Sequence record: PV037725.1 | Direction: 5' to 3' (one strand) | Length of the DNA: 64,000 nt | In this document: in pieces, positions 14,449-42,880 of the stretch | Layout: each line of letters starts with the position of its first letter | Numbering within the stretch: the first letter of the stretch is position 1 | Notes under the pieces: generated by a model | Told to the model about the DNA's origin: nothing | Databases searched by the model: none | What the model saw: the letters and a program-made list of their open reading frames with translations, nothing else | Position numbers and translations under genes: made by a program

Positions 14449-15252
14449 ATGAAAGACACGCTTGGCGATCGGATGAAGCTTTATGAAGGTACCTACGCAC
14501 AACAGCGATTCCTACCCGGCTTACCGATCGTAGCCCGAATCGATGGCCGCGGGTTTAGTAAGTTTACCCGTGGTATGGAACGACCGTTTGACCAGACCAT
14601 GTCAGACGCAATGATCCACACTACACGTGAGCTAGTTAAGCATACCCAGGCTTCAGTGGGCTACACTCAAAGTGATGAGATTACCTTGGTATGGTACTCG
14701 AACGACTTTAAGTCTAAGGTTTGGTTTGATGGCCGTGTACAGAAGATGACCAGTCTCTTGGGTGCGCACGCTACACTGTACTTTAACCAGTACGTGAATA
14801 AGCACATGCCCCAGTATGCCAAACGTAACCCTACCTTTGACGCGCGGGTTTGGAACGTTCCTACATTGCAGGAAGCGGTTAACGTACTGATCTGGCGTGA
14901 GTGGGATGCTAGCAAGAACTCCATTCAAATGGCTGGTCACACCTACTTCTCTAACACTCGTCTGCACAAGAAAAATACGAGTGAGATCCAAGAGATGCTT
15001 TGGTCTGAGCACGGCGTGAATTGGAACGACTATCCTCGGTTCTTTAAACGTGGTACGTATATCGGTTGGCATCGTCTAGATGGTGGTCGACAACTAACTG
15101 CGGATGAAGTGGCAATGCTACCACCAAAGCACACTGCCCGGAGTAACGGTGGTTTTATCGAGAAGTCTACACGAGCCTTGATCGAACACGATATCCCACC
15201 AATCACGAAATTGGACGACCCAATCAAATTCTTCTTTGGTAATGAGGTGTAA
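14449..15252 (+). CDS. thg1: tRNA(His) guanylyltransferase Thg1 / Thg1-like protein
   Basis: RIDGRGFSKFT, KPFD-like RPFD, YTQSDEITL, FDARV, WR..DA.KNSI. Confidence 0.92.
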   Translation: MKDTLGDRMKLYEGTYAQQRFLPGLPIVARIDGRGFSKFTRGMERPFDQTMSDAMIHTTRELVKHTQASVGYTQSDEITLVWYSNDFKSKVWFDGRVQKMTSLLGAHATLYFNQYVNKHMPQYAKRNPTFDARVWNVPTLQEAVNVLIWREWDASKNSIQMAGHTYFSNTRLHKKNTSEIQEMLWSEHGVNWNDYPRFFKRGTYIGWHRLDGGRQLTADEVAMLPPKHTARSNGGFIEKSTRALIEHDIPPITKLDDPIKFFFGNEV

Positions 15253-19602: not shown

Positions 19603-19608
19603 CCGATT

Positions 19609-19635
19609 GGAGGTTCTTCGGAGCCTCCCTTTATT
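19609..19635 (+). terminator. intrinsic terminator
   Basis: GGAGGTTC-TTCG-GAGCCTCC-CTTTATT. Confidence 0.8.
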
Positions 19636-19658
19636 CCGTATTTTATTTGGAGTTACTT

Positions 19659-20216
19659 ATGGACTTTTTCGTTACCGATCCTAAAGGTGTTTACATTCTC
19701 AACCACGATGGCCCAATTCGAGTTGATCATCATGAAAATAGTTTGTACATACTAAACAACTACCACAAATCTGAGTACACTCAAAGCCTGATTGATATCA
19801 CTTTGGTAAGTAGTGGAAACGAAAGTGAAGTTGAGCACCGCCTGGAAGAGCTAACTAAGTTAAAACGTTTTGACTTTTTACTAGTTAAGAATTACCCAGA
19901 GACCAGTCGTATAAACTCAATGGGTTCGTTGGGGTCTCAGGATCACTATACACGGGCATCTAGAATCGCCCTGGCCTATGTGAAAGACGCTAAGGTCGAT
20001 CACCCGGATACCTTTAGATCGTTCACCATCGCTGACGATGATACACGTAAAGTATTGGCTCGCTTACCAAAGATTACCCCAGAAGTAATGGATGCATTGG
20101 TAACAGCCGGCGTTATACGTAGTTGGGAATACTACGAATATCCATGGGTGAATAACTTTACATTCACACAACCCAAAGGTAGTCCTGCGCCTGCGGACTT
20201 GAGGACTTACGCATAA
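19659..20216 (+). CDS. hypothetical protein
   Basis: GGAG RBS; coupled to ligase paralog. Confidence 0.75.
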   Translation: MDFFVTDPKGVYILNHDGPIRVDHHENSLYILNNYHKSEYTQSLIDITLVSSGNESEVEHRLEELTKLKRFDFLLVKNYPETSRINSMGSLGSQDHYTRASRIALAYVKDAKVDHPDTFRSFTIADDDTRKVLARLPKITPEVMDALVTAGVIRSWEYYEYPWVNNFTFTQPKGSPAPADLRTYA

Positions 20217-21160
20217 TGAACGATCACGAGGCTAGACACTGTGTCAGTATCCGAGCTGTAAAGGAAATCCAAAAGCTTCGTGATGAGATTCATTTTCATG
20301 AGCTAGCTCGAGATATCTTTAAGAGTGGTGAGTTTGACGAAGTAGCTTATCAAGAAGCACAAGCAGCTTTGTATCGGTTGTCAGAACGCTTTGGTCGTGA
20401 GGCATTGATCACCACTAAGGCTAGGCCCATCGCTGAACAGATAAAATCGTTTGGCGCTGTGGCTAAACATGACTTCCCGGTGCTAGATTACAAACCTGCA
20501 CGCACATTGATGCATATCCGTAATTGGTTAGGTATGGTTGATAGTGACTATACCGACAGCATTGATATTGTCATGACACCTTACTTTAATGGGTGCCGTG
20601 TCGAACTAGTGTATCAGGGTGGATCACTTCATAAAGCCATCACTAAGGGTGGTGGTTTGACTGGTACTGACTTCACCATGAACGCCTACCTGATCGAGGG
20701 TATTCCACAGCAGATCAATGAAACTGAACGTGTAAGTATTCGTGGAGTTATTACCTCTACACTTAAAAACACTAAGGGTGTGGATGAGAAGAGATTCATC
20801 GCTGCAAATCTGATCTCAAATGAACCCACTAACATTTATTTGAATCATCTCGTATTCGTGCCAGATGACTGGCATATTCCTGGTACAACATTCAACTCAA
20901 CAGATCTCAGATCTATATCACTAGCTTGGAATATCGAACCGGGGTACGCAATGACTTTCCCCGGTCAGTATAAAGAGCTTGGGTATCTTGAAGAGAAGAT
21001 TGCTGAATTCAGACATGCCGCTAAATGTAAGATTCCCTTCACGGGGATTTTGTTTACAGTTAACACTCTCGCTAGGAAGATGGAGCTTGGCTATACGTCA
21101 GTTCATCCCGAGTGGGCAATTTTGTTAGAAGAGGAACAATCCAATGGCGTCAGCACTTGA
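20216..21160 (+). CDS. LigA adenylation-domain paralog, catalytically degenerate
   Basis: collinear with LigA N-terminal half; KxDG replaced by YFNG, TRGDG by TKGGG, RGE by RGV, DGIV.K by TGILFT; ends before the OB fold. Confidence 0.8.
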   Translation: MNDHEARHCVSIRAVKEIQKLRDEIHFHELARDIFKSGEFDEVAYQEAQAALYRLSERFGREALITTKARPIAEQIKSFGAVAKHDFPVLDYKPARTLMHIRNWLGMVDSDYTDSIDIVMTPYFNGCRVELVYQGGSLHKAITKGGGLTGTDFTMNAYLIEGIPQQINETERVSIRGVITSTLKNTKGVDEKRFIAANLISNEPTNIYLNHLVFVPDDWHIPGTTFNSTDLRSISLAWNIEPGYAMTFPGQYKELGYLEEKIAEFRHAAKCKIPFTGILFTVNTLARKMELGYTSVHPEWAILLEEEQSNGVST

Positions 21161-23231
21161 ATACGCTGAATTAGTAAAACGGATTCGACACTACAACTAC
21201 TTCTATTACGTGTTGGACATCACACTGGTACCGGACTCTGTCTATGATCAGTTGTTCAAGGCGTTGAAGTTAATGGAGGAAATAAACCCGGAGTGGGTAT
21301 CCAAGAACTCTCCAACTCAAACAGTCGGTCATCTTGCGTATGAGTCGCACTTTGAGTTGGTGAAGCGTGCCATACCAATGCTCAGCCTAGACAACGTGTT
21401 TACTCCAGATGAAGCGGTTGATTGGGGCACCGATGTTCATGGTGACATCCTCGACTCCAAGACCGATGAATCCGCTGAGATCGTAACTGAGTGGAAGATG
21501 GACGGCCTCAGTCTGGACGTAGATTACACGTACGACACGATGAATATTGCTACAACACGGGGCGATGGCACTACCGGTGAGAACGTTACGCCTAATGCCA
21601 TGATGGTTGAAGGTATCCCACGTGTACTGAAAACACCACGTCATGGCGGGGTGTCCATTCGGGGTGAAGTCGTTGTACGGTTGGCCGACTACAACCAAAT
21701 AAATGCAGAGCTGGAAGCAGCTGGTAAGAAAACCTTCGCCAACCCACGTAACTATGCTGCGGGCAGTTTGCGGCAAAAAGACCCACGTATTACACGTGAG
21801 CGCAAGTTGGTGTTTGTAGCCTACAGCATCGAACGTGCTTTTGGTGATCCTGAAGCTGATTGGTATAAAGACCAAGAGTGGTTGAAAGAGAATGGCTTCT
21901 TTACGGCGGATACTGGTAAACGTCTGAATCACTCCAGACCGGGCATGACTACAGGCGTACCTAAATTACTTGAAGAATGCCAGGCTGAGCGACCTAACTA
22001 TCCATTCGAAGTGGATGGTATTGTGTTCAAGGTCGTAAAGCATGCGCACCGTGAGAAGCTGGGGTTCACTAGCCGATTCCCAAGATGGGCTCGGGCTTAT
22101 AAGTTCCCTGCCTCTAAAGGTGAGACTCGTTTACTAAGTGTTGACCGTCAAGTAGGTCGGACAGGTAAGCTGACTCCGATGGCGCGTATTGAGCCAGTAC
22201 ATGTTCACGGTACCACTATCTCTAACGTGACTATCCATAACCTGAAGGAACTGGATCAACACCAGTTGTTTGAAGGTTGCTATGTGGAGATCTCTCGTGC
22301 GGGTGACGTAATCCCTTATCTGGAACGACGTATTACGGACAACCCAGGCTTGCCTGTTTATGGTGAGGTCGAATGCTGCCCTACCTGTAATACAAAAGTA
22401 GTGGTGATAGTCGGTAAGAAAACCAAAGACAATCCTGAAGGGTCACGTACTGAGTACTGTCCTAACTCGAAATGTCCTGGTCGTCAGATTGCCCACCTTA
22501 AGTATTGCACTCACCGCGATGTGTTGAACATTAAGGGTCTGGGTGATGAAACCGTAGTTAAGCTGCATGAACAGGGCGTGGTGGACGTAACTCGACCATT
22601 GAGTTTACTGCTACTCAAGCCAGAAGACTTCCTGAAGATTGGTGAGTCTGATCGAATGGCAGAGAAGCTGGGAACCGCTGTAACGATTGCTAAGCTTACT
22701 TTGGACTTACCTCGAGTCGTTACAGCCTTGGGTATTTCTGGCGCGGCAGATGGTACAGCAGAGCGCTTGTCGCGGGTCATCAGATCACTCGAAGAGATCT
22801 CTAAAGCCAGTATCGATCAGATGCGTGCAATCCCTGATATCGGTCCAGTTACTGCGGAAAGTATCTTCGAGTTCTTTGATGAAGATAACCGTAAGCCTGA
22901 TGCTGAGTCTGCATGGAAACCTTTTGTGGGTGAACAACACCTTAAGGCTCCTGAGCCATTGAGTGGGTTATTCCAACACGGCACTACTTTTGTCGTCACC
23001 GGTAGTAAGTTCGGTGGTAAGGCCCGTAAGGACTTGGAGAAATGGTTTAAGCAAAATGGTGCAACCGTATCGAGTACCGTAACTAAATCGACCACCACGT
23101 TGTACTGCGGTACCAAATACACTGCACACAAACTTGAGACGGCTAAGCAACTGGGTATCCCCTACGTCATCTATAACGAAGACGGAATTGCTGAAACCAA
23201 TATCGAAAATTCAATTGACTTAAATTTCTGA
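21144..23231 (+). CDS. ligA: NAD-dependent DNA ligase
   Basis: KMDG, TRGDG, RGE, NPRNYAAGSLRQ, DGIVFK, RWARAYKF, OB fold, C4 zinc finger, HhH, BRCT. Confidence 0.97.
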   Translation: MASALEYAELVKRIRHYNYFYYVLDITLVPDSVYDQLFKALKLMEEINPEWVSKNSPTQTVGHLAYESHFELVKRAIPMLSLDNVFTPDEAVDWGTDVHGDILDSKTDESAEIVTEWKMDGLSLDVDYTYDTMNIATTRGDGTTGENVTPNAMMVEGIPRVLKTPRHGGVSIRGEVVVRLADYNQINAELEAAGKKTFANPRNYAAGSLRQKDPRITRERKLVFVAYSIERAFGDPEADWYKDQEWLKENGFFTADTGKRLNHSRPGMTTGVPKLLEECQAERPNYPFEVDGIVFKVVKHAHREKLGFTSRFPRWARAYKFPASKGETRLLSVDRQVGRTGKLTPMARIEPVHVHGTTISNVTIHNLKELDQHQLFEGCYVEISRAGDVIPYLERRITDNPGLPVYGEVECCPTCNTKVVVIVGKKTKDNPEGSRTEYCPNSKCPGRQIAHLKYCTHRDVLNIKGLGDETVVKLHEQGVVDVTRPLSLLLLKPEDFLKIGESDRMAEKLGTAVTIAKLTLDLPRVVTALGISGAADGTAERLSRVIRSLEEISKASIDQMRAIPDIGPVTAESIFEFFDEDNRKPDAESAWKPFVGEQHLKAPEPLSGLFQHGTTFVVTGSKFGGKARKDLEKWFKQNGATVSSTVTKSTTTLYCGTKYTAHKLETAKQLGIPYVIYNEDGIAETNIENSIDLNF

Positions 23232-27902: not shown

Positions 27903-27906
27903 TATA

Positions 27907-27934
27907 GTCCTCCCCACGGGGAGGGCTTTATGTC
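27907..27934 (+). terminator. intrinsic terminator
   Basis: GTCCTCCC-CACG-GGGAGGGC-TTTATGTC, near-identical to 52282. Confidence 0.85.
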
Positions 27935-27958
27935 AATTATTCACAAGAGGGTAACACC

Positions 27959-28818: not shown

Positions 28819-30063
28819 ATGTCTTATCTGAATCTGAATGAAACTGGTACTCCAATCAAAGCTTGGGTTAAAGGTGTTCCTGTAGAACCCGAAGCTGTAA
28901 AGCAACTCAAGAACATTGCGGGGTTGCCTTTCATTTATAGCCACATTGCAGTAATGCCTGACGTTCACGTCGGTAAGGGTGCAACCATTGGTTCTGTAAT
29001 CGCTACACAGGGCGCTATCATCCCCGCTGCGGTGGGTGTTGACTTGGGTTGCGGAATGGCCGCTCAACTCACTAACTTCGTCGCTAGCGATCTCCCAGAC
29101 GACCTCTCGGGTCTGCGTAGCCTAATCGAGGCAGCAGTTCCACATGGCCGTACTAACAATGGTGCTCCTGGTGACCGTGGCGCTTGGGGTAACTTCGAAG
29201 ATGCGGTATATAAGAAGCTTGACCCCGCTTTGCAAGAAGAAGTGAAGTCCATCAAGGAACGGTTTAAGCGTTTGGTTGACCGTTACCCTAAATTGAAGCG
29301 TGCTGTTAACGGCGCATTCAACCATGCTGGTACTTTGGGCACTGGTAACCACTTCGTTGAAATCTGTCTTGACGAATATGATCGTGTATGGATCATGTTG
29401 CACTCGGGTTCTCGCGGTGTAGGTAATGCCATCGGTCAGACCTTTATTAACCTGGCTAAAGAAGAAGCTGTGCGTCAAGGTCTGGATCTCCCAGATATGG
29501 ATCTGGCTCACCTGGAACGTTACACTGGCTTCTATGATGACTATTGCTTCGGTGTAAGCACTGCACAAGACTTTGCTCGTCTGAACCGCACCATCATGAT
29601 GCGTAACACCATTGAAGCTTTTGCTAAGTTCATGGGTCGTCCATTGACTACTTCGCTCTCTGCTGTTAACTGTCACCACAACTACGTTTCGTTTGAAACC
29701 CACCTAGGTGAGGATGTCATCGTTACACGTAAAGGTGCAGTATCTGCTGCTGAAGGTCAAATGGGTATCATCCCTGGCTCAATGGGGGCTAAGTCTTTTA
29801 TCGTTCGTGGTAAGGGTAATCCTGATTCGTTCTGCTCGTGTTCCCATGGTGCTGGTCGAGTGATGTCACGTACGGCGGCTAAGAAAGTCTTTACGTTGGC
29901 TGACCACATTCGTGACACTGCTGGTGTCGAATGCCGTAAAGATGAATCCGTACTGGATGAAACCCCTAAGGCTTATAAGAACATCGATGACGTCATGGCT
30001 GCTCAAGCTGACCTAGTCGAGATTGTTCACACTCTCCGTCAAATCGTTTGCGTTAAGGGGTAA
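28819..30063 (+). CDS. rtcB: RtcB RNA ligase (3'-phosphate/5'-OH)
   Basis: MPDVH, GVDLGCG, GTLGTGNHF, HSGSRG, HHNY, RKGA, PGSMG, SHGAGR, DETPKAYK. Confidence 0.97.
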   Translation: MSYLNLNETGTPIKAWVKGVPVEPEAVKQLKNIAGLPFIYSHIAVMPDVHVGKGATIGSVIATQGAIIPAAVGVDLGCGMAAQLTNFVASDLPDDLSGLRSLIEAAVPHGRTNNGAPGDRGAWGNFEDAVYKKLDPALQEEVKSIKERFKRLVDRYPKLKRAVNGAFNHAGTLGTGNHFVEICLDEYDRVWIMLHSGSRGVGNAIGQTFINLAKEEAVRQGLDLPDMDLAHLERYTGFYDDYCFGVSTAQDFARLNRTIMMRNTIEAFAKFMGRPLTTSLSAVNCHHNYVSFETHLGEDVIVTRKGAVSAAEGQMGIIPGSMGAKSFIVRGKGNPDSFCSCSHGAGRVMSRTAAKKVFTLADHIRDTAGVECRKDESVLDETPKAYKNIDDVMAAQADLVEIVHTLRQIVCVKG

Positions 30064-31618: not shown

Positions 31619-32476
31619 ATGATCGAGTTTAGTACGTACAAAGGTTGGTCACTTGTAGAGGGTACCGTCTTTAAAGATGGTTGCCCCAATCCACGCTTGA
31701 CTAAATACCAAATCTGTCAAGTAGAAGAACAAGTCACCGTTACATTGAAGGCACACATCCCAGACATGACTGAGATGTTTAGTCTGATCCTTACCGTTGA
31801 TGCTGTTCGACGTATTCGACCAGATGCCAAGATTAAGCTGATCCTTCCATATCTACCATACGCTCGACAAGACCGTGTGTGTAATCGTGGTGAGGCAAAC
31901 GGTATAGCCGCCTTTGCGCGAGTATTGAATAGCTTAGATTTCGCCAGTGTCGAACTACTGGACCCGCACAGTGATGTTGCCGTTGGTGTCATTGATCGTA
32001 GCATTACTACCAATATGGCTGAGTTCATGAACCGCCAGACCAGAATGGGTTGGATGGACTTCGGCAATACTTGGCTGGTGGCACCTGATGCTGGTGCAGT
32101 AAAACGTGTAAAGGAACTCGTTAAAGAACTTGGTGCGGCGGGTATGATTACCGCGACTAAGGAACGGGATACGGAAACTCGTGAACTCACTAAGACCAAA
32201 CTGGACGAAGACACCACCGGACGTAATATTCTGGTTGTGGACGATCTGTGTGATGGAGGTCGTACGTTCATCGCCTTGGCTAAAGCAATCCGTGAACATG
32301 GTGAACCCGAAACACTTCGATTGTGGGTAACTCACGGTATCTTCAGTTATGGTACTGAGGTGGTGACTGAACACTTTGATGGCGTTTACACCACTAACAG
32401 CTTCCAACATGAAGCGATCGGGCATACCGATGGTCAGGGCAACCACGATCAGAAGATGCACTGGTTCCAAGTTTAA
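31619..32476 (+). CDS. prs: ribose-phosphate pyrophosphokinase-like enzyme (NARP1 Adps candidate)
   Basis: PYLPYARQDR, DPHS, APDAGA, KERD, VVDDLCDGGRTF, THGIFS. Confidence 0.9.
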   Translation: MIEFSTYKGWSLVEGTVFKDGCPNPRLTKYQICQVEEQVTVTLKAHIPDMTEMFSLILTVDAVRRIRPDAKIKLILPYLPYARQDRVCNRGEANGIAAFARVLNSLDFASVELLDPHSDVAVGVIDRSITTNMAEFMNRQTRMGWMDFGNTWLVAPDAGAVKRVKELVKELGAAGMITATKERDTETRELTKTKLDEDTTGRNILVVDDLCDGGRTFIALAKAIREHGEPETLRLWVTHGIFSYGTEVVTEHFDGVYTTNSFQHEAIGHTDGQGNHDQKMHWFQV

Positions 32477-32505
32477 TTCATTCAATCTAAATAGAGGTTT
32501 CAAGT

Positions 32506-34230
32506 ATGTCGACTAATTTCCAACTGTTTGGCCCTACCACTGCTGATGTCTACAAAATGGGTCACGGCCCACTGTATCCACGTGGTACTAACTTCGCTTA
32601 CGGTAACGGTACCCCACGTGCTGATCGTTTGTTTATCGGTTCGAAATCCCAATCGCAGTTCTGGGATCACAAAGTAGTTTGGTTTGGTATCCAAGCAGTA
32701 ATGCGTGAAGTTGCTGGTATCTGGGATACTAGCTTCTTTAAGCGTGACAAGGCTACTGTGATCCGTCGTTACAAACGCCGCATGGACACCTGCATTGGTC
32801 CAGGCATGGTTGACATCGATGCCATGGCTGCACTGCACGATCTGGGTTACCTGCCAGTGACAGTACTGAGCATTCCAGAAGGTGCTCGCCTGAACATGAA
32901 CGTTCCGGGTTATGTTATCTACAACACCAAGCCCGAGTTCTACTGGGTTGTCAACTACCTCGAAACCATCATGTCTTCGTTGATCTGGGCCATGATCACC
33001 AACACTACGATTGCTTATGAGTATCGTCGTGTGTTGGAACACTTCGCACATCTGACTGGTTCGCCAATTGAAGGTGTTGACTTCCAAGGTCACGACTTTG
33101 CACTGCGTGGGATCAACAACCCAACGGCTGCCGCATTCTCGAACTCTGGTCACTTGGTATTCTTCAAAGGTACTGACACTCTGCCAGCGATTGACTTCGT
33201 TGAAGACATGTACTTTGCTGATGCTGAGAAAGAGTTCCTTGCAGCTTCCGTAGTTGCAACTGAACACGCCGTAGCTACCTCCAACATTCTGTATCGTCTG
33301 GCTCTGAAGATCAAAGCTCTGGGTAAAACCGAAGCTGAGATTCCTAAGGAAGAACTCGATGCACTGAAGCTGGAAGCAGAACGTGAGTTCATTATTGAAG
33401 CCATTACTGAGAAAGTACCAACCGGTATCATCTCTCTGGTTTCCGATAGCTTTGACTTCTGGGGTGTGTTGACCCGTGTGTTCCCTTCTATTAAGGAAGA
33501 GATCCTGAGTCGTAAGCCTGATGCTAACGGTTTGGCTAAAGTCGTAGTTCGTCCAGACTCGGGTGATCCGGTTGAAGTGATCTGTGGTCGTGAAATCCTC
33601 ACCTACAAAGAATGGCAGACTGGTTCCAAAGTAAATGGTCAACTGGTTTACCATTATGACCAAGTTTGTAAAGTGACCCTAGAACGAGAAGGTTATGACT
33701 TCACCCCGTATGTACTTAGTGCCGAAGAGAAGGGTGCTGTTGAAGTACTGTGGGAAACCTTCGGTGGTACTGTGAACGAGAAGGGCTTCAAAGTCCTGCA
33801 CGAACGTATTGGCCTGATCTATGGTGACTCCATCACCGTAGCCCGTACCGAAGAGATCATGCGCCGCCTGATGAAGAAAGGTTTCGCATCCTCTAACTGG
33901 GTACTGGGTATCGGTTCTTACACCTATCAGCACAACACTCGTGATACCTTTGGCTTTGCGGTTAAAGCAACCGCCATTCAGGTAGACGATCTGTTTGTTG
34001 AACTGTTTAAGGCACCGAAGACTGAAGGTGAAACCAACAAGAAATCTGCTAAGGGTTTCCTGAAGGTGGTTCGTGATGAGGCTGGTAACTACGTCCTCGA
34101 GCAAAACCAAACGTTCGGTATTGATGAGATTGATACTTCGTCGGGTGAACTGAAAGTCGTCTTCAAAGACGGTAAGTTCCCTAACCCAGTGACTTTCTCT
34201 GAAGTCCGCGCACGCGCCGCATTGGCATAA
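32506..34230 (+). CDS. nadV: nicotinamide phosphoribosyltransferase-like enzyme (NARP1 Namat candidate)
   Basis: D.YK.GH, HDFALRG, ATEHAV, SLVSDSFD, VVRPDSGDP, LIYGDSIT, GIGSYTYQ, KKSAKG. Confidence 0.93.
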   Translation: MSTNFQLFGPTTADVYKMGHGPLYPRGTNFAYGNGTPRADRLFIGSKSQSQFWDHKVVWFGIQAVMREVAGIWDTSFFKRDKATVIRRYKRRMDTCIGPGMVDIDAMAALHDLGYLPVTVLSIPEGARLNMNVPGYVIYNTKPEFYWVVNYLETIMSSLIWAMITNTTIAYEYRRVLEHFAHLTGSPIEGVDFQGHDFALRGINNPTAAAFSNSGHLVFFKGTDTLPAIDFVEDMYFADAEKEFLAASVVATEHAVATSNILYRLALKIKALGKTEAEIPKEELDALKLEAEREFIIEAITEKVPTGIISLVSDSFDFWGVLTRVFPSIKEEILSRKPDANGLAKVVVRPDSGDPVEVICGREILTYKEWQTGSKVNGQLVYHYDQVCKVTLEREGYDFTPYVLSAEEKGAVEVLWETFGGTVNEKGFKVLHERIGLIYGDSITVARTEEIMRRLMKKGFASSNWVLGIGSYTYQHNTRDTFGFAVKATAIQVDDLFVELFKAPKTEGETNKKSAKGFLKVVRDEAGNYVLEQNQTFGIDEIDTSSGELKVVFKDGKFPNPVTFSEVRARAALA

Positions 34231-34239
34231 CGACATATC

Positions 34240-34280
34240 GCTCCTACCTTCGGGTAGGAGCTTTATTCAATTCTTTTTTG
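34240..34280 (+). terminator. intrinsic terminator
   Basis: GCTCCTACC-TTCG-GGTAGGAGC-TTTATT. Confidence 0.9.
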
Positions 34281-34287
34281 GTGACCT

Positions 34288-34485
34288 ATGTCTATTTGGT
34301 ATATGTTAATTCCGACGGCGTTCCTATTTGGTGAGTTTGGTTTCTGTGAACTATGGCTCAGATCCCGTAAACCGGTATACAACAATCCAGTGATTTTCAA
34401 AGATGACGGCAACTTCTGGTTATTTTGGATGCAGTGGGTTTGTATGATTGGATTTGGTGCAAGTCTGCTATGGGTGGGGCATTAG
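34288..34485 (+). CDS. small membrane protein
   Basis: two hydrophobic helices. Confidence 0.6.
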   Translation: MSIWYMLIPTAFLFGEFGFCELWLRSRKPVYNNPVIFKDDGNFWLFWMQWVCMIGFGASLLWVGH

Positions 34486-34518
34486 ATTTTATTTCAGATT
34501 TATATCATGGTTGGGTAT
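34481..34518 (+). promoter_or_regulatory. early promoter
   Basis: ATTAGAT-N4-TTT-CAGATT-TATATCAT-N4-GGGTAT; 19 nt identical to the 46742 copy. Confidence 0.75.
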
Positions 34519-34551
34519 TAACCCATTCAATTCACCTAAGAGGCTAAATCC

Positions 34552-35499
34552 ATGAGTATCCAACGTCTGACTTTTGAAGGCATTCTGAACTACCTCTCGA
34601 CTAAGAAAGGTACTGTATGGAACATGGTTTTCCAAGCATCCCAATTGGAGCTGGAAGACTTCAATGATTCCATCACATACGGTAACATCACACTAAACCT
34701 CAGCCCGAATGCTACTCGTGATATGAAGTGCTATGATGATCACGTGTATTTCAAAATGCGTAAGCATGGTATCGTGCACGAGATTATGGCACCGTATACT
34801 GCACTGATGATCATCCAAGATCCTGATGATCCATCTCAGTCGATGGCGTGGCCATATTTCTTGGACCATGGCGACGACTACATTCCGGACGAACCAGACC
34901 GTAAGTCTAACGTTTTCCATCTACCCAATTCGGGCATTAAGGTTGAGCTGCGCGTACCAACGCTGGCAGATTACAATAACCTGAAGCTGGATAACGTTAT
35001 CCACTTCCCAGGCGGCAGTGCTCACGTCGGAGAAGAAATCCAAATGGACAAACCGCTTACCTTGGGTGAGCTGATCAAAGCTAACCAACAGGCAGCTTTT
35101 GCTAAACAGTTTCCAGATCTGGTTGGCAATGACGGTAATATTGATCCGGGTAAGGTATACGAGAAGTCCCAGTCAATGCGCGAACCTACATTGTTGGAGC
35201 GTATTGAACTGCGTGGTTGGACTGTCATCGAAGGCGGAGGTCATAAGCCTGAAGCCAGTATGCCATTCATCGATGAGGTGTACCGTGCTAAACGTGCCAA
35301 GCGTGAATCCGATGCTACCTTGGCGAAGATCACGATGAACGCTGAAGTCAAGCTGGGTGGTTTTGAAATCCGTTCAGATGGCTCCAATGGCAATTCGGTT
35401 TACTTCCCCGACCTGGATGTATCTAAGTGCCACTTCCCAGTTCGCCGTATTAACCGCCCTACATGGGTATCTGTAATAGAAGGTGGTAAACGTGACTAA
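34552..35499 (+). CDS. sspB: SspB (ClpXP adaptor) homolog with long C-terminal extension
   Basis: ITLNLSPNATRDM..YDDHVYF...GIVHEI.APY.AL aligns by eye with the SspB core IVLNIAPRAV.NL....DEVRF...G.P..V.VP..AV. Confidence 0.8.
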   Translation: MSIQRLTFEGILNYLSTKKGTVWNMVFQASQLELEDFNDSITYGNITLNLSPNATRDMKCYDDHVYFKMRKHGIVHEIMAPYTALMIIQDPDDPSQSMAWPYFLDHGDDYIPDEPDRKSNVFHLPNSGIKVELRVPTLADYNNLKLDNVIHFPGGSAHVGEEIQMDKPLTLGELIKANQQAAFAKQFPDLVGNDGNIDPGKVYEKSQSMREPTLLERIELRGWTVIEGGGHKPEASMPFIDEVYRAKRAKRESDATLAKITMNAEVKLGGFEIRSDGSNGNSVYFPDLDVSKCHFPVRRINRPTWVSVIEGGKRD

Positions 35500-35905
35500 A
35501 CCTGCACCTGTCAACATCGGTCGAAACATCGCTATCCGTTTAATGATCGAGAAAGCGTTTGATGTGTTGGAGATGATTAAAGATCCACTGGAACTCTGGT
35601 GTGTCGCAGAACTGGCGCCGGAGGTACGTAGCTCCCTCCCACCCAGTGACGAAAAGTTGATGTCGATTGAACTCGGACCATTGACGCGTAATACCCGTAT
35701 TGAACTGTATCCAGATCACTTGAAGGTAGCACTAAGCGCTGATACACCCAAAGTAAAATTACCATACGTTGCTATCTATTGCATGGTGACTTCAGGTGAC
35801 TTGGCAAAGGATCTTAACTGGTTGCGTGGTGACACTGAAGGTCGTGATGTTGCATACGTCAACTTGGTAGAAGGTTTCCACGGGATTCCTAAACACGCCA
35901 AGTGA
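35492..35905 (+). CDS. divergent SspB-like paralog lacking a tail
   Basis: MSIELGP...IELYPDHLKV......V.LPYVAI; GTG start coupled to upstream stop. Confidence 0.55.
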   Translation: MTKPAPVNIGRNIAIRLMIEKAFDVLEMIKDPLELWCVAELAPEVRSSLPPSDEKLMSIELGPLTRNTRIELYPDHLKVALSADTPKVKLPYVAIYCMVTSGDLAKDLNWLRGDTEGRDVAYVNLVEGFHGIPKHAK

Positions 35906-35912
35906 CGCTATA

Positions 35913-35944
35913 GGGGATTACAGTAGTAGTCCCTTTTCTTTTTT
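35913..35944 (+). terminator. intrinsic terminator
   Basis: GGGATTAC-AGTA-GTAGTCCC-TTTTCTTTTT. Confidence 0.8.
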
Positions 35945-35958
35945 GACAGAGGTTTAAA

Positions 35959-38026: not shown

Positions 38027-38028
38027 AT

Positions 38029-38055
38029 AGGGGTTCCTTCGGGAACCCTTTTATG
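38029..38055 (+). terminator. intrinsic terminator
   Basis: GGGTTCC-TTCG-GGAACCC-TTTTATG. Confidence 0.85.
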
Positions 38056-38063
38056 GAGTAGTT

Positions 38064-38566: not shown

Positions 38567-39943
38567 ATGGCTAGTAAGTTTGCAGCAGTTCGTGAGGAAA
38601 CGCGGGCTCTGGTTAAAGTAGTTGCAGTTGATTTCTTGACCGCGATCAAGAAGGCTGACTTCGTAGAGTTGGCACATGTTGGTGGTTGGCAGTGCGTAGT
38701 TAAGAAAGGTGAGTTCCAGCCTGGCGATCGTGCGATGTATATCGAGATCGATTCGTTGCTACCGGTTAGTCAGCCTGAGTTTGCATTCCTCGGTGAACGC
38801 AGTGAAGGTCTCAGGACTATCGACGACGTATTGTACTCGCGGATTCGAACCATCAAACTTCGTGGTGAGCTTTCGCAGGGTCTGTTGCTCCCGCTACCTG
38901 GACGTTTTCGTGCGGAGAAGATTGGTGCTAACTTGACCAACAAACTAGATGTCCGAAAATTTGAGGAAGTCATCCTCAATAGTAACGGTCTAGATGCACG
39001 ATTGAATACTGAGTCTAAAACTTGGCACGAGCGCCTGATCAAGTGGGTTGCTGGTAAGCCTGCACCATCTCAGTTTAGCCCATGGCCTGCACACCTATCT
39101 AAGTCCGATCAGGAACGCGTTCAGAACATCGGTAACCGCTTCGCAGAATCCGCTAACAATGGCGAACTGTTTGAAGAGACCGTTAAATTGGATGGTCAAT
39201 CGATGACTGTCTTCGATGTCAATACTGGCATTGACGATGGGCGTCTGACTGGTGTCTGCTCGCGGAACTATCAGTTGTCGTTGAACGACATCCACTTTAC
39301 TTGGGAACAAACTATCCGTCGCTTCTTCGCACAGAACCTGTTTGCTTTGGTTAGTGGTGTAAGTGGTGTCTGGCGCAGCATTCAACAAATTTCTGGCTTG
39401 GTGCGTAATAAAGAATTGACTCCGATTGAAGGGATCAAAGAATTCTTCGATCGTAAGTTCTTCTGGTTCACTGGGCCTAAGCGTATGATCTCGGCACGTG
39501 ACGAATCGTGTGTGGCATACACCTTGGACAACCTTGTTCTGCACAATCTGGTTAAGTGGAACACCCTCAACAACGAACGTATCTCTGTCCAGGGTGAACT
39601 CGTCGGTCCGGGTATTCAGAATAACTACGAACAAGTTGAAGAACGTCAGTTCTATGTGTATCAGGTGTACCGCGATGGTAACAAGAAGGTCTTACCTGCT
39701 GAAGCCCGGCGGATCACCAATGAACTGGGTCTGAAATACGTACCACTGTTGAACTCTGCAACTCCACTCCCCAACACGATCAAAGACGTCTTGAAACGTG
39801 CAGCAGGTAAAGGGGCATTGAACCCCGAAGTGAAGCGTGAGGGTATCGTGTTCAAGTCGGTAGACCGTGACTTTAGCTTTAAGGTAATCAGTAATGACTA
39901 CCTACTACAGAAAGAGAAAGCACTGGACGCTGAAGAAGCTTAA
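38567..39943 (+). CDS. ATP-dependent RNA ligase, DRB0094-like (Rnl2 superfamily)
   Basis: GWQCVVKKGEF, EIDS, GELSQGL, motif I KLDG, QGELVG, EGIVFK, FKVISNDYL. Confidence 0.9.
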   Translation: MASKFAAVREETRALVKVVAVDFLTAIKKADFVELAHVGGWQCVVKKGEFQPGDRAMYIEIDSLLPVSQPEFAFLGERSEGLRTIDDVLYSRIRTIKLRGELSQGLLLPLPGRFRAEKIGANLTNKLDVRKFEEVILNSNGLDARLNTESKTWHERLIKWVAGKPAPSQFSPWPAHLSKSDQERVQNIGNRFAESANNGELFEETVKLDGQSMTVFDVNTGIDDGRLTGVCSRNYQLSLNDIHFTWEQTIRRFFAQNLFALVSGVSGVWRSIQQISGLVRNKELTPIEGIKEFFDRKFFWFTGPKRMISARDESCVAYTLDNLVLHNLVKWNTLNNERISVQGELVGPGIQNNYEQVEERQFYVYQVYRDGNKKVLPAEARRITNELGLKYVPLLNSATPLPNTIKDVLKRAAGKGALNPEVKREGIVFKSVDRDFSFKVISNDYLLQKEKALDAEEA

Positions 39944-39951
39944 TCTAATGT

Positions 39952-39976
39952 GGGTTCCTTAGGGAACCCCTTTATG
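39952..39976 (+). terminator. intrinsic terminator
   Basis: GGGTTCC-TTAG-GGAACCC-CTTTATG. Confidence 0.8.
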
Positions 39977-39984
39977 GGGGTTAT

Positions 39985-42823: not shown

Positions 42824-42831
42824 CCATAGGT

Positions 42832-42860
42832 GAGTCCCTTCGGGGACTCCCTTTTATTTC
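42832..42860 (+). terminator. intrinsic terminator
   Basis: GAGTCCC-TTCG-GGGACTC-CCTTTTATT. Confidence 0.85.
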
Positions 42861-42880
42861 ATTTTTAGCTAGAGGCTTAT

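Follow-up and report, generated by a model that had tools for sequence, protein, structure and literature searches.

What would a phage gain from two adjacent genes whose products resemble SspB, the bacterial adaptor of the ClpXP protease? Proteins of the SspB family share a substrate-binding domain, a flexible linker and a short C-terminal tail that binds ClpX; they dimerise through an N-terminal helix and bind the ssrA tag or RseA, and ClpXP itself resides in the cytoplasm. The question is raised by two overlapping open reading frames, ORF1 and ORF2, of Pseudomonas phage Viktualia, a phage of P. syringae with a genome of 322,655 bp (PV037725.1), of which we analysed bases 1-64000 (the window). 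ORF1 (34552-35499, on the plus strand like all the features of the unit described below; 315 residues) was delimited from the ORF list and GenBank and recognised by profile and fold searches as an SspB-like protein with a long extension. It is annotated in GenBank as coding sequence CDS0060, 'Sspb-like stringent starvation protein', and ORF2 as CDS0061, a 'hypothetical protein' beginning at 35543. At this locus Viktualia has a single related isolate, the nucleus-forming jumbo phage 201phi2-1, whose orthologues are gp347 ('SspB domain-containing protein') and gp349. Our analysis indicated that ORF1 begins with an SspB domain, that ORF2 is likely its paralogue of the same fold, and that the two-gene unit is probably a way to tap or block host ClpXP.

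The SspB substrate-binding domain was located in residues 1-105 of ORF1 (34552-34866) by AlphaFold2 (AF2) modelling, Foldseek and a family profile. The profile of 25 ORF1 relatives matched SspB structures in the PDB with E = 4e-12 over residues 9-98. The AF2 model had a predicted local distance difference test score (pLDDT) of 79-90 over about residues 1-105 and matched SspB structures in Foldseek with E = 2.5e-7 and template-modelling (TM) scores of 0.69-0.78 (target-normalised), the root-mean-square deviation of the core being about 2.1-2.5 Å for most of the top crystal-structure matches. ORF1 alone gave weak but consistent matches to SspB in Pfam (E = 0.004), PHROGs (PHROG 8945, 'SspB-like', E = 3.5e-8), the PDB (E of about 0.01) and NCBIfam (E = 3.5e-6). 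In alignments with canonical SspBs, ORF1 retained conserved residues of the SspB core, and it shared 35% identity over 48 residues with gp18 of phage pf16. An N-terminal helix was present in both AF2 models (residues 3-16 of ORF1 and 12-32 of ORF2). Judged by its predicted fold, the N-terminal part of ORF1 is a true SspB substrate-binding domain, in agreement with a preliminary description of this DNA, which had recognised an SspB core here from the letters alone.

The second gene required a revision of its start before it could be compared. The mechanically called ORF2 begins with GTG at 35483. In its relatives the first residue corresponds to GTG 35492, and this codon is preceded by GAAGGTGG. 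The GenBank start at 35543 is too late, since the relatives conserve about 17 residues upstream of it. We therefore set ORF2 to 35492-35905 (137 residues), on the basis of the relatives' starts and of the GAAGGTGG ahead of the codon, with the result that its start overlaps the stop of ORF1. By sequence, no SspB was found for ORF2 in the PDB, Pfam, PHROGs, NCBIfam or PADLOC, either with the protein alone or with 6- and 23-member profiles, and an exhaustive profile search returned only 19 relatives, all of 122-149 residues save one marginal match of 381 residues. The link of ORF2 to SspB came only from the fold search, from profile-profile comparison and from cross-matches of hidden Markov models (HMMs).

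In the AF2 model of ORF2 (pLDDT 70.8, predicted TM score 0.67) the N-terminal helix is followed by strands, and the top 18 fold matches in the PDB were all SspB or SspB-like, with probabilities of 0.66-0.99. Among the viral structure predictions of BFVD, the model matched SspB-named proteins of the phages Noxifer, Rebecca and phiA8-29 and also gp347 of 201phi2-1. Comparison of the ORF2 and ORF1 families by hhalign gave 83% probability with E = 9e-6; the probability had risen from 65% as the ORF2 alignment deepened, and the register stayed constant, with ORF2 residues 54-113 against ORF1 residues 43-103. The HMM of the ORF2 family also matched the SspB core of one ORF1 relative (E = 3e-6). A scan of the ORF2 family with a matrix of canonical SspB tails (described below) gave no tail-like match, and a short conserved peptide was noticed near the C-terminus (residues 130-134 of 137). 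These comparisons of sequence families and models suggest that an SspB fold and paralogy with ORF1 are likely for ORF2, and the earlier view of it as a divergent, tail-less SspB-like core can be retained with moderate confidence. We also noticed that phiA8-29, an unrelated Aeromonas phage, has two proteins of predicted SspB fold, one named SspB (155 residues) and one uncharacterised (139 residues); paired SspB-fold genes may thus recur in phages.

Beyond the core, ORF1 continues for about 210 residues that were modelled with low confidence and a few helices and appeared linker-like; residues 105-315 matched no family and no solved structure. Four blocks in this extension are common to the relatives, as judged from the alignment of 25 sequences: residues 212-229 (block 1, 35185-35238), 235-252 (block 2, 35254-35307), 273-296 (block 3, 35368-35439) and 302-313 (block 4, 35455-35490). 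The segment before them, residues 110-210, varies in length and is partly absent from many relatives. The preliminary description had pointed to two pairs of short repeats in the extension and proposed all of them as ClpX-docking motifs. The first pair, NVFHLP (residues 120-125, from nt 34909) and NVIHFP (residues 148-153, from nt 34993), lies in the variable linker segment at 34909-35010, which is gapped in 7-11 of the 25 relatives; the motifs are only partly kept and bear no resemblance to the canonical SspB tail in the matrix scan, so that a docking role for this pair was not supported.

The second pair fared better. It consists of WTVIEGG (residues 223-229, from nt 35218), with which block 1 ends, and the C-terminal motif RPTWVSVIEGGK (residues 302-313), which makes up block 4 and is our candidate tether for the ClpX N-domain. 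According to the column counts, block 4 has P303, W305 and V308 in 25 of 25 sequences and R302, G311 and G312 in 24. The internal motif (residues 221-229) is a copy of the C-terminal motif with one residue fewer between the Trp and the VI, and it is conserved to the same degree: R221 is found in 23 sequences, W223 in 17 (with Met in the other 8), V225 and I226 in 24 each, G228 in all 25 and G229 in 22. The two remaining blocks have other characters. Block 2, a basic stretch within the predicted helix 239-263, has an invariant R251 and nearly invariant P238, I240, D241, E242, A246 and K247, and matched no known family. Block 3, which includes the sequence F-P-D-L-D-V-S-K-C, has S282, F285, P286, L288, D289, V290, C293 and F295 invariant in the 25 sequences.

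To compare block 4 with the tails of SspB, we took gp18 of phage pf16 (PMC5587285, KU873925) as the canonical comparator, gathered 120 canonical SspBs with it, built a position-specific scoring matrix (PSSM) from their last eight residues and scanned the 25 members of the ORF1 family. The canonical tails are nearly fixed, with P at position -7 and L at -5 in 120 of 120 sequences; R/K dominates at -8, S/A/T at -6, K/R at -4, V/I at -3, V at -2 and K at -1. The terminal motif of the ORF1 family reads R-P-x, an invariant Trp, a hydrophobic-x-V-I/V run and x-G-G-K, and its Trp is not found in canonical tails. The ungapped scan was not significant for most members, and thus a one-residue insertion, the Trp, has to be allowed for. 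With one inserted residue allowed, the terminal motif was the best match of the whole protein in 14 of 25 members and was individually significant in 8 of them, with up to 18 bits, in a set of related sequences that do not amount to 25 independent trials. The most divergent member stops right after the hydrophobic run, like a canonical SspB. Derivation of the terminal motif from an SspB tail is therefore supported, from sequence comparison, at the level of the family, and of the proposed docking motifs the W..VIEGG pair, kept by all relatives, remains, its terminal copy being the tail-like one.

As the SspB tail peptide is bound by ClpX's zinc-binding domain wherever it is placed in a chain (PMC12373786), the internal copy in ORF1 is plausible as a tether as well. 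The ungapped scan often ranked block 3 first; four of the eight tail columns (P, L, V and K) recur in its F-P-D-L-D-V-S-K stretch, but the match was not significant, and we did not keep it as a third tail-like motif because its score was at chance level. A similar ending, I-Q-G-G-K-K, was seen in a more distant phage protein, Psa21 gp299.

The two genes tend to stay together. A gene of the ORF2 family follows ORF1 in about 8 of 14 lineages: in Viktualia, in 201phi2-1 and in the relatives designated L005, L008, L012 and L015, and two further contigs appear, by their matching lengths, to hold both. The overlap between stop and start amounts to one base in L005, L008 and L015 and to eight in Viktualia; in L012, where gene starts were not called, the two reading frames overlap. 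Between gp347 and gp349 of 201phi2-1 there is a 54-residue ORF, gp348 (L002, 7183-7347), which overlaps both and is not present in Viktualia. In a tblastn search of the phage collection, the full ORF1-type extension was found among isolates only in Viktualia and 201phi2-1, and no more than three loci were gained by scanning viral and metagenome contigs.

The pair is flanked by signals of its own. Upstream, a promoter-like, AT-rich block at 34487-34509 was identified by the recurrence of a 10-mer core and by identity with 201phi2-1. The core has four exact copies in the window against 0.4 expected, a number reached in none of 100 shuffles; each of the four lies shortly upstream of a gene, on the gene strand, and the similarity reaches beyond the core. 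A stretch of 19 nt around it is identical upstream of gp347 in 201phi2-1, although the flanking DNA is poorly conserved and the small gene beside it has diverged strongly between the two phages. Early promoters of jumbo phages have been described as phage-specific and AT-rich, with a highly conserved block of about 10 nt that is found repeatedly upstream of early operons (PMC7598289). By its sequence the Viktualia block fits this class and would be a phage-specific candidate early promoter of the virion RNA polymerase type. A sigma-70 scan upstream of the unit gave no match, and this also fits a promoter of a phage RNA polymerase. Downstream, an intrinsic-terminator-like element (35912-35945) would close the unit: a hairpin at 35912-35935 (-13.1 kcal/mol, z = -2.3) followed by a T run, with a hairpin homologous in position and sequence after gp349 of 201phi2-1. 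Only four of its ten pairs are G-C, and read-through is thus possible; for the genes that follow, CDS0062 and thymidylate synthase, no separate promoter is evident. The promoter-like block, two overlapping ORFs and terminator-like site outlined in the preliminary description were all located in their places, and both the promoter block and the hairpin are kept in 201phi2-1.

How could such a unit act? We read it as an SspB adaptor system in phage form that is directed at host ClpXP in the cytoplasm of the infected cell, a reading for which we see about an even chance. The SspB domain of ORF1 would bind a peptide signal on a target, and the C-terminal motif would tether ORF1 to the N-terminal zinc-binding domains of ClpX, the internal copy probably serving as a second tether. 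ORF2, a tether-less SspB-fold domain, would be made from the same transcript by coupled translation and would most likely pair with the ORF1 core through an SspB-type dimer interface, giving a heterodimer with two unlike binding grooves and both tethers on one chain. We infer ClpX binding, the heterodimer, delivery in preference to blockade, the identity of the targets and the early timing. The predicted layout of ORF1, an SspB-fold core followed by a low-confidence, linker-like remainder as in SspB, speaks for an adaptor. An SspB-like ClpXP adaptor has also been reported in the nucleus-forming phage RAY, and the RAY protein is cytoplasmic (PMC10299810), which places it in the same compartment as ClpXP and supports the adaptor reading. 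The most specific form of this proposal, an asymmetric heterodimer with both ClpX tethers in cis, whose tail-less chain has a re-specified groove and which passes a particular host protein, such as one of defence or regulation, on to ClpXP in the cytoplasm, we regard as unlikely; if true, it would be a natural two-subunit degrader in infection by nucleus-forming phages.

Several observations weigh against the adaptor reading. ORF1 stays under the curated cut-offs for SspB (17.6 bits against 27 for Pfam PF04386 and 26.9 against 198 for the NCBIfam equivalog), and because both proteins fail the curated family thresholds, ORF1 and ORF2 have to be described as homologous domains and not as SspB orthologues. 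For ORF2, two of the five AF2 models had pLDDT values of 68-71 and the others 41-47, and the Foldseek E-values were 0.015-0.2. The terminal motif of Viktualia itself has diverged: it is the best match in the protein, but with p = 0.45, so that descent from the SspB tail is supported for the family and not for the Viktualia copy alone. The internal motif resembles the phage's own tail and not the canonical one. Blocks 2 and 3, the most strictly conserved parts of the extension, are not accounted for by the adaptor model; they are left without an account under each of the other readings discussed below as well. Finally, in five lineages ORF1 has no ORF2 beside it and in a sixth none could be detected, the thymidylate synthase gene following directly. 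As 5-6 of about 14 lineages are without ORF2, ORF1 can work in its absence, and ORF2 is a frequent but dispensable partner.

Among the alternatives, the one that survives best is blockade. Here the ORF1 motifs would occupy the N-domains of ClpX and shut out host adaptors and N-domain-dependent substrates, which would protect phage proteins from ClpXP or stall the regulated proteolysis of the host, and ORF2 would sequester tagged proteins or peptides that are never delivered. Such an effect has a parallel in the free SspB tail peptide, by which degradation stimulated by SspB is inhibited, as is that of lambda O and of FtsZ (PMC3983244), and both the two motif copies on a single ORF1 chain and the binding fold without a tether in ORF2 would suit it. 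A pure blocker would not need the well-conserved SspB binding domain, with its hallmark residues, that ORF1 keeps. We regard blockade as possible but rather doubtful, and delivery by an adaptor as the preferred reading.

Alternatively, the two proteins could act independently. ORF1 would then be a homodimeric SspB analogue that hastens the removal of ssrA-tagged or other host-type substrates, and ORF2 an unrelated accessory that shares only fold and transcript. The lineages in which ORF1 occurs alone are in agreement with this, as are the near-canonical SspB that Pseudomonas phage pf16 carries alone and the structures closest to the ORF1 core, which are gammaproteobacterial SspBs solved with ssrA peptides. 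Where ORF2 is present, however, its abutment or overlap with the end of ORF1 persists as ORF1 identity falls to about 31-38%, a pattern typical of partners made in a fixed ratio, and we find independent action quite unlikely. Least probable of all, and improbable in our judgement, is that the SspB fold has no link to ClpX and is used as a general peptide binder in some task peculiar to the phage, for instance on proteins bound for the phage nucleus, with the terminal motifs docking on another phage or host partner: the scores under the curated thresholds, the drift of the Viktualia tail from the canonical profile, the strictly conserved blocks 2 and 3 without a known counterpart and, in Psa21 (L009, 2408-5231), a gene annotated as FtsH that lies downstream of the one for the SspB-like gp299, separated from it by the gene for an unrelated 240-residue protein, would favour it, but the family's terminal motif resembles the canonical tail and has the same C-terminal position, and the RAY homologue is cytoplasmic.

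Whichever use prevails, three features stand out in the unit: a natural pair of SspB-fold proteins, perhaps forming a heterodimer; a putative tether motif that has diverged from the bacterial tail and occurs twice on the same chain; and two peptide blocks under strict conservation. If the adaptor model is true, it would reveal the way in which cytoplasmic proteolysis is used by nucleus-forming phages, and it would supply rules taken from nature for designing tethered degradation in bacteria, as is already practised with engineered degraders (PMC12373786). Should it be false, what remains is the revised start and the fold of an ORF labelled 'hypothetical protein', together with a mapped promoter motif.

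The surroundings of the unit showed some further features. Between an upstream terminator-like hairpin (34240-34261) and the promoter block lies CDS0059 (34288-34485), a strongly hydrophobic ORF of 65 residues; 201phi2-1 has a small ORF, gp346, at the same place with little sequence similarity. Directly upstream (31619-34230) are the genes for ribose-phosphate pyrophosphokinase and nicotinamide phosphoribosyltransferase, a salvage pair for nicotinamide adenine dinucleotide (NAD), which also precedes the SspB-like gene in the metagenomic relatives L006 and L017 and may counter NAD-depleting host defences. Intergenic gaps of the window repeatedly contain a G+C-rich hairpin followed directly by TTTAT (for example 19603-19658, 27903-27958, 34231-34287, 38027-38063, 39944-39984 and 42824-42880); these sites may act both as terminators and as middle or late starts. 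For phiKZ, a TATG element has been described at late starts (PMC7598289). RNA-repair genes are also present, namely tRNA-His guanylyltransferase (14449-15252), an RtcB-type ligase (28819-30063) and an RNA ligase (38567-39943), and the RtcB and RNA ligase genes hold their positions around the SspB-like gene in L005, L006 and L018. Two successive overlapping coding sequences, 20216-21160 and 21144-23231, are both annotated as NAD-dependent DNA ligase; either one gene has been split or the ligase may consist of two parts. In a metagenomic relative (L006 4732-7080, L007 2067-4415) the neighbouring thymidylate synthase gene contains an intein (Pfam Intein_splicing, Hint), and in L015 and L018 that gene is followed by one for a GIY-YIG/I-TevI-like homing endonuclease. 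No tRNA or transfer-messenger RNA gene was found in the 64-kb window, and no further SspB-like ORF within the first 100 kb of the Viktualia genome.

To our knowledge, only a small number of phage proteins redirect or inhibit AAA+ proteases of the host, and no example of SspB type has been elucidated. Bacterial SspB (PDB 1OU8, 1OX9, 1YFN and 8ET3) has its fold in common with the ORF1 core and probably with ORF2, and its layout of a domain, a flexible linker and a short C-terminal motif in common with ORF1. The R/K-P and the hydrophobic-x-V-V/I run of its tails are likewise shared with the terminal motif of the ORF1 family. In contrast to the short acidic linker of the bacterial proteins, ORF1 has its extension of about 210 residues with four conserved blocks; its motif has the additional Trp, a G-G-K ending and a second, internal copy, and the partner ORF2 lacks a tail. 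A phage-borne SspB in a Pseudomonas host is also known from the T4-like phage pf16 (PMC5587285), but gp18 of that phage, with 128 residues, lies over the Pfam threshold (E = 1e-34), has a canonical tail and has no paralogue. SPO1 Gp53 (PMC6873191) gives a precedent for an adaptor-like phage protein that modulates a host Clp protease; the protease there is ClpCP and the host Bacillus, and the protein is unrelated to ORF1.

For the proposed pairing, the nearest comparison is the designed SspB heterodimer PDB 1ZSZ, which was among the top structural matches of both ORF1 and ORF2. It indicates that an SspB-type interface can hold two unlike subunits; that complex was engineered from Haemophilus SspB, and the pairing in Viktualia is our proposal. 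The closest natural counterparts are the SspB-like proteins of nucleus-forming jumbo phages, such as RAY gp039 (an Erwinia phage), 201phi2-1 gp347, that of Noxifer, Psa21 gp299 and PhiPA3 gp270, which belong to the same group and carry the same SspB-like annotation; several proteins of this kind are matched structurally by the ORF2 model. Literature searches on gp347 and gp232 gave no relevant matches, and in the searched records and literature on the SspB-like proteins of nucleus-forming phages no tail-less paralogue and no duplicated terminal motif is described. As SspB-like genes of this phage group are already annotated and published, the system is not new in kind; what is new here is the fold assignment of ORF2 with its corrected start, the tail motif in its duplicated, diverged form, and the conservation of the two genes as a unit.

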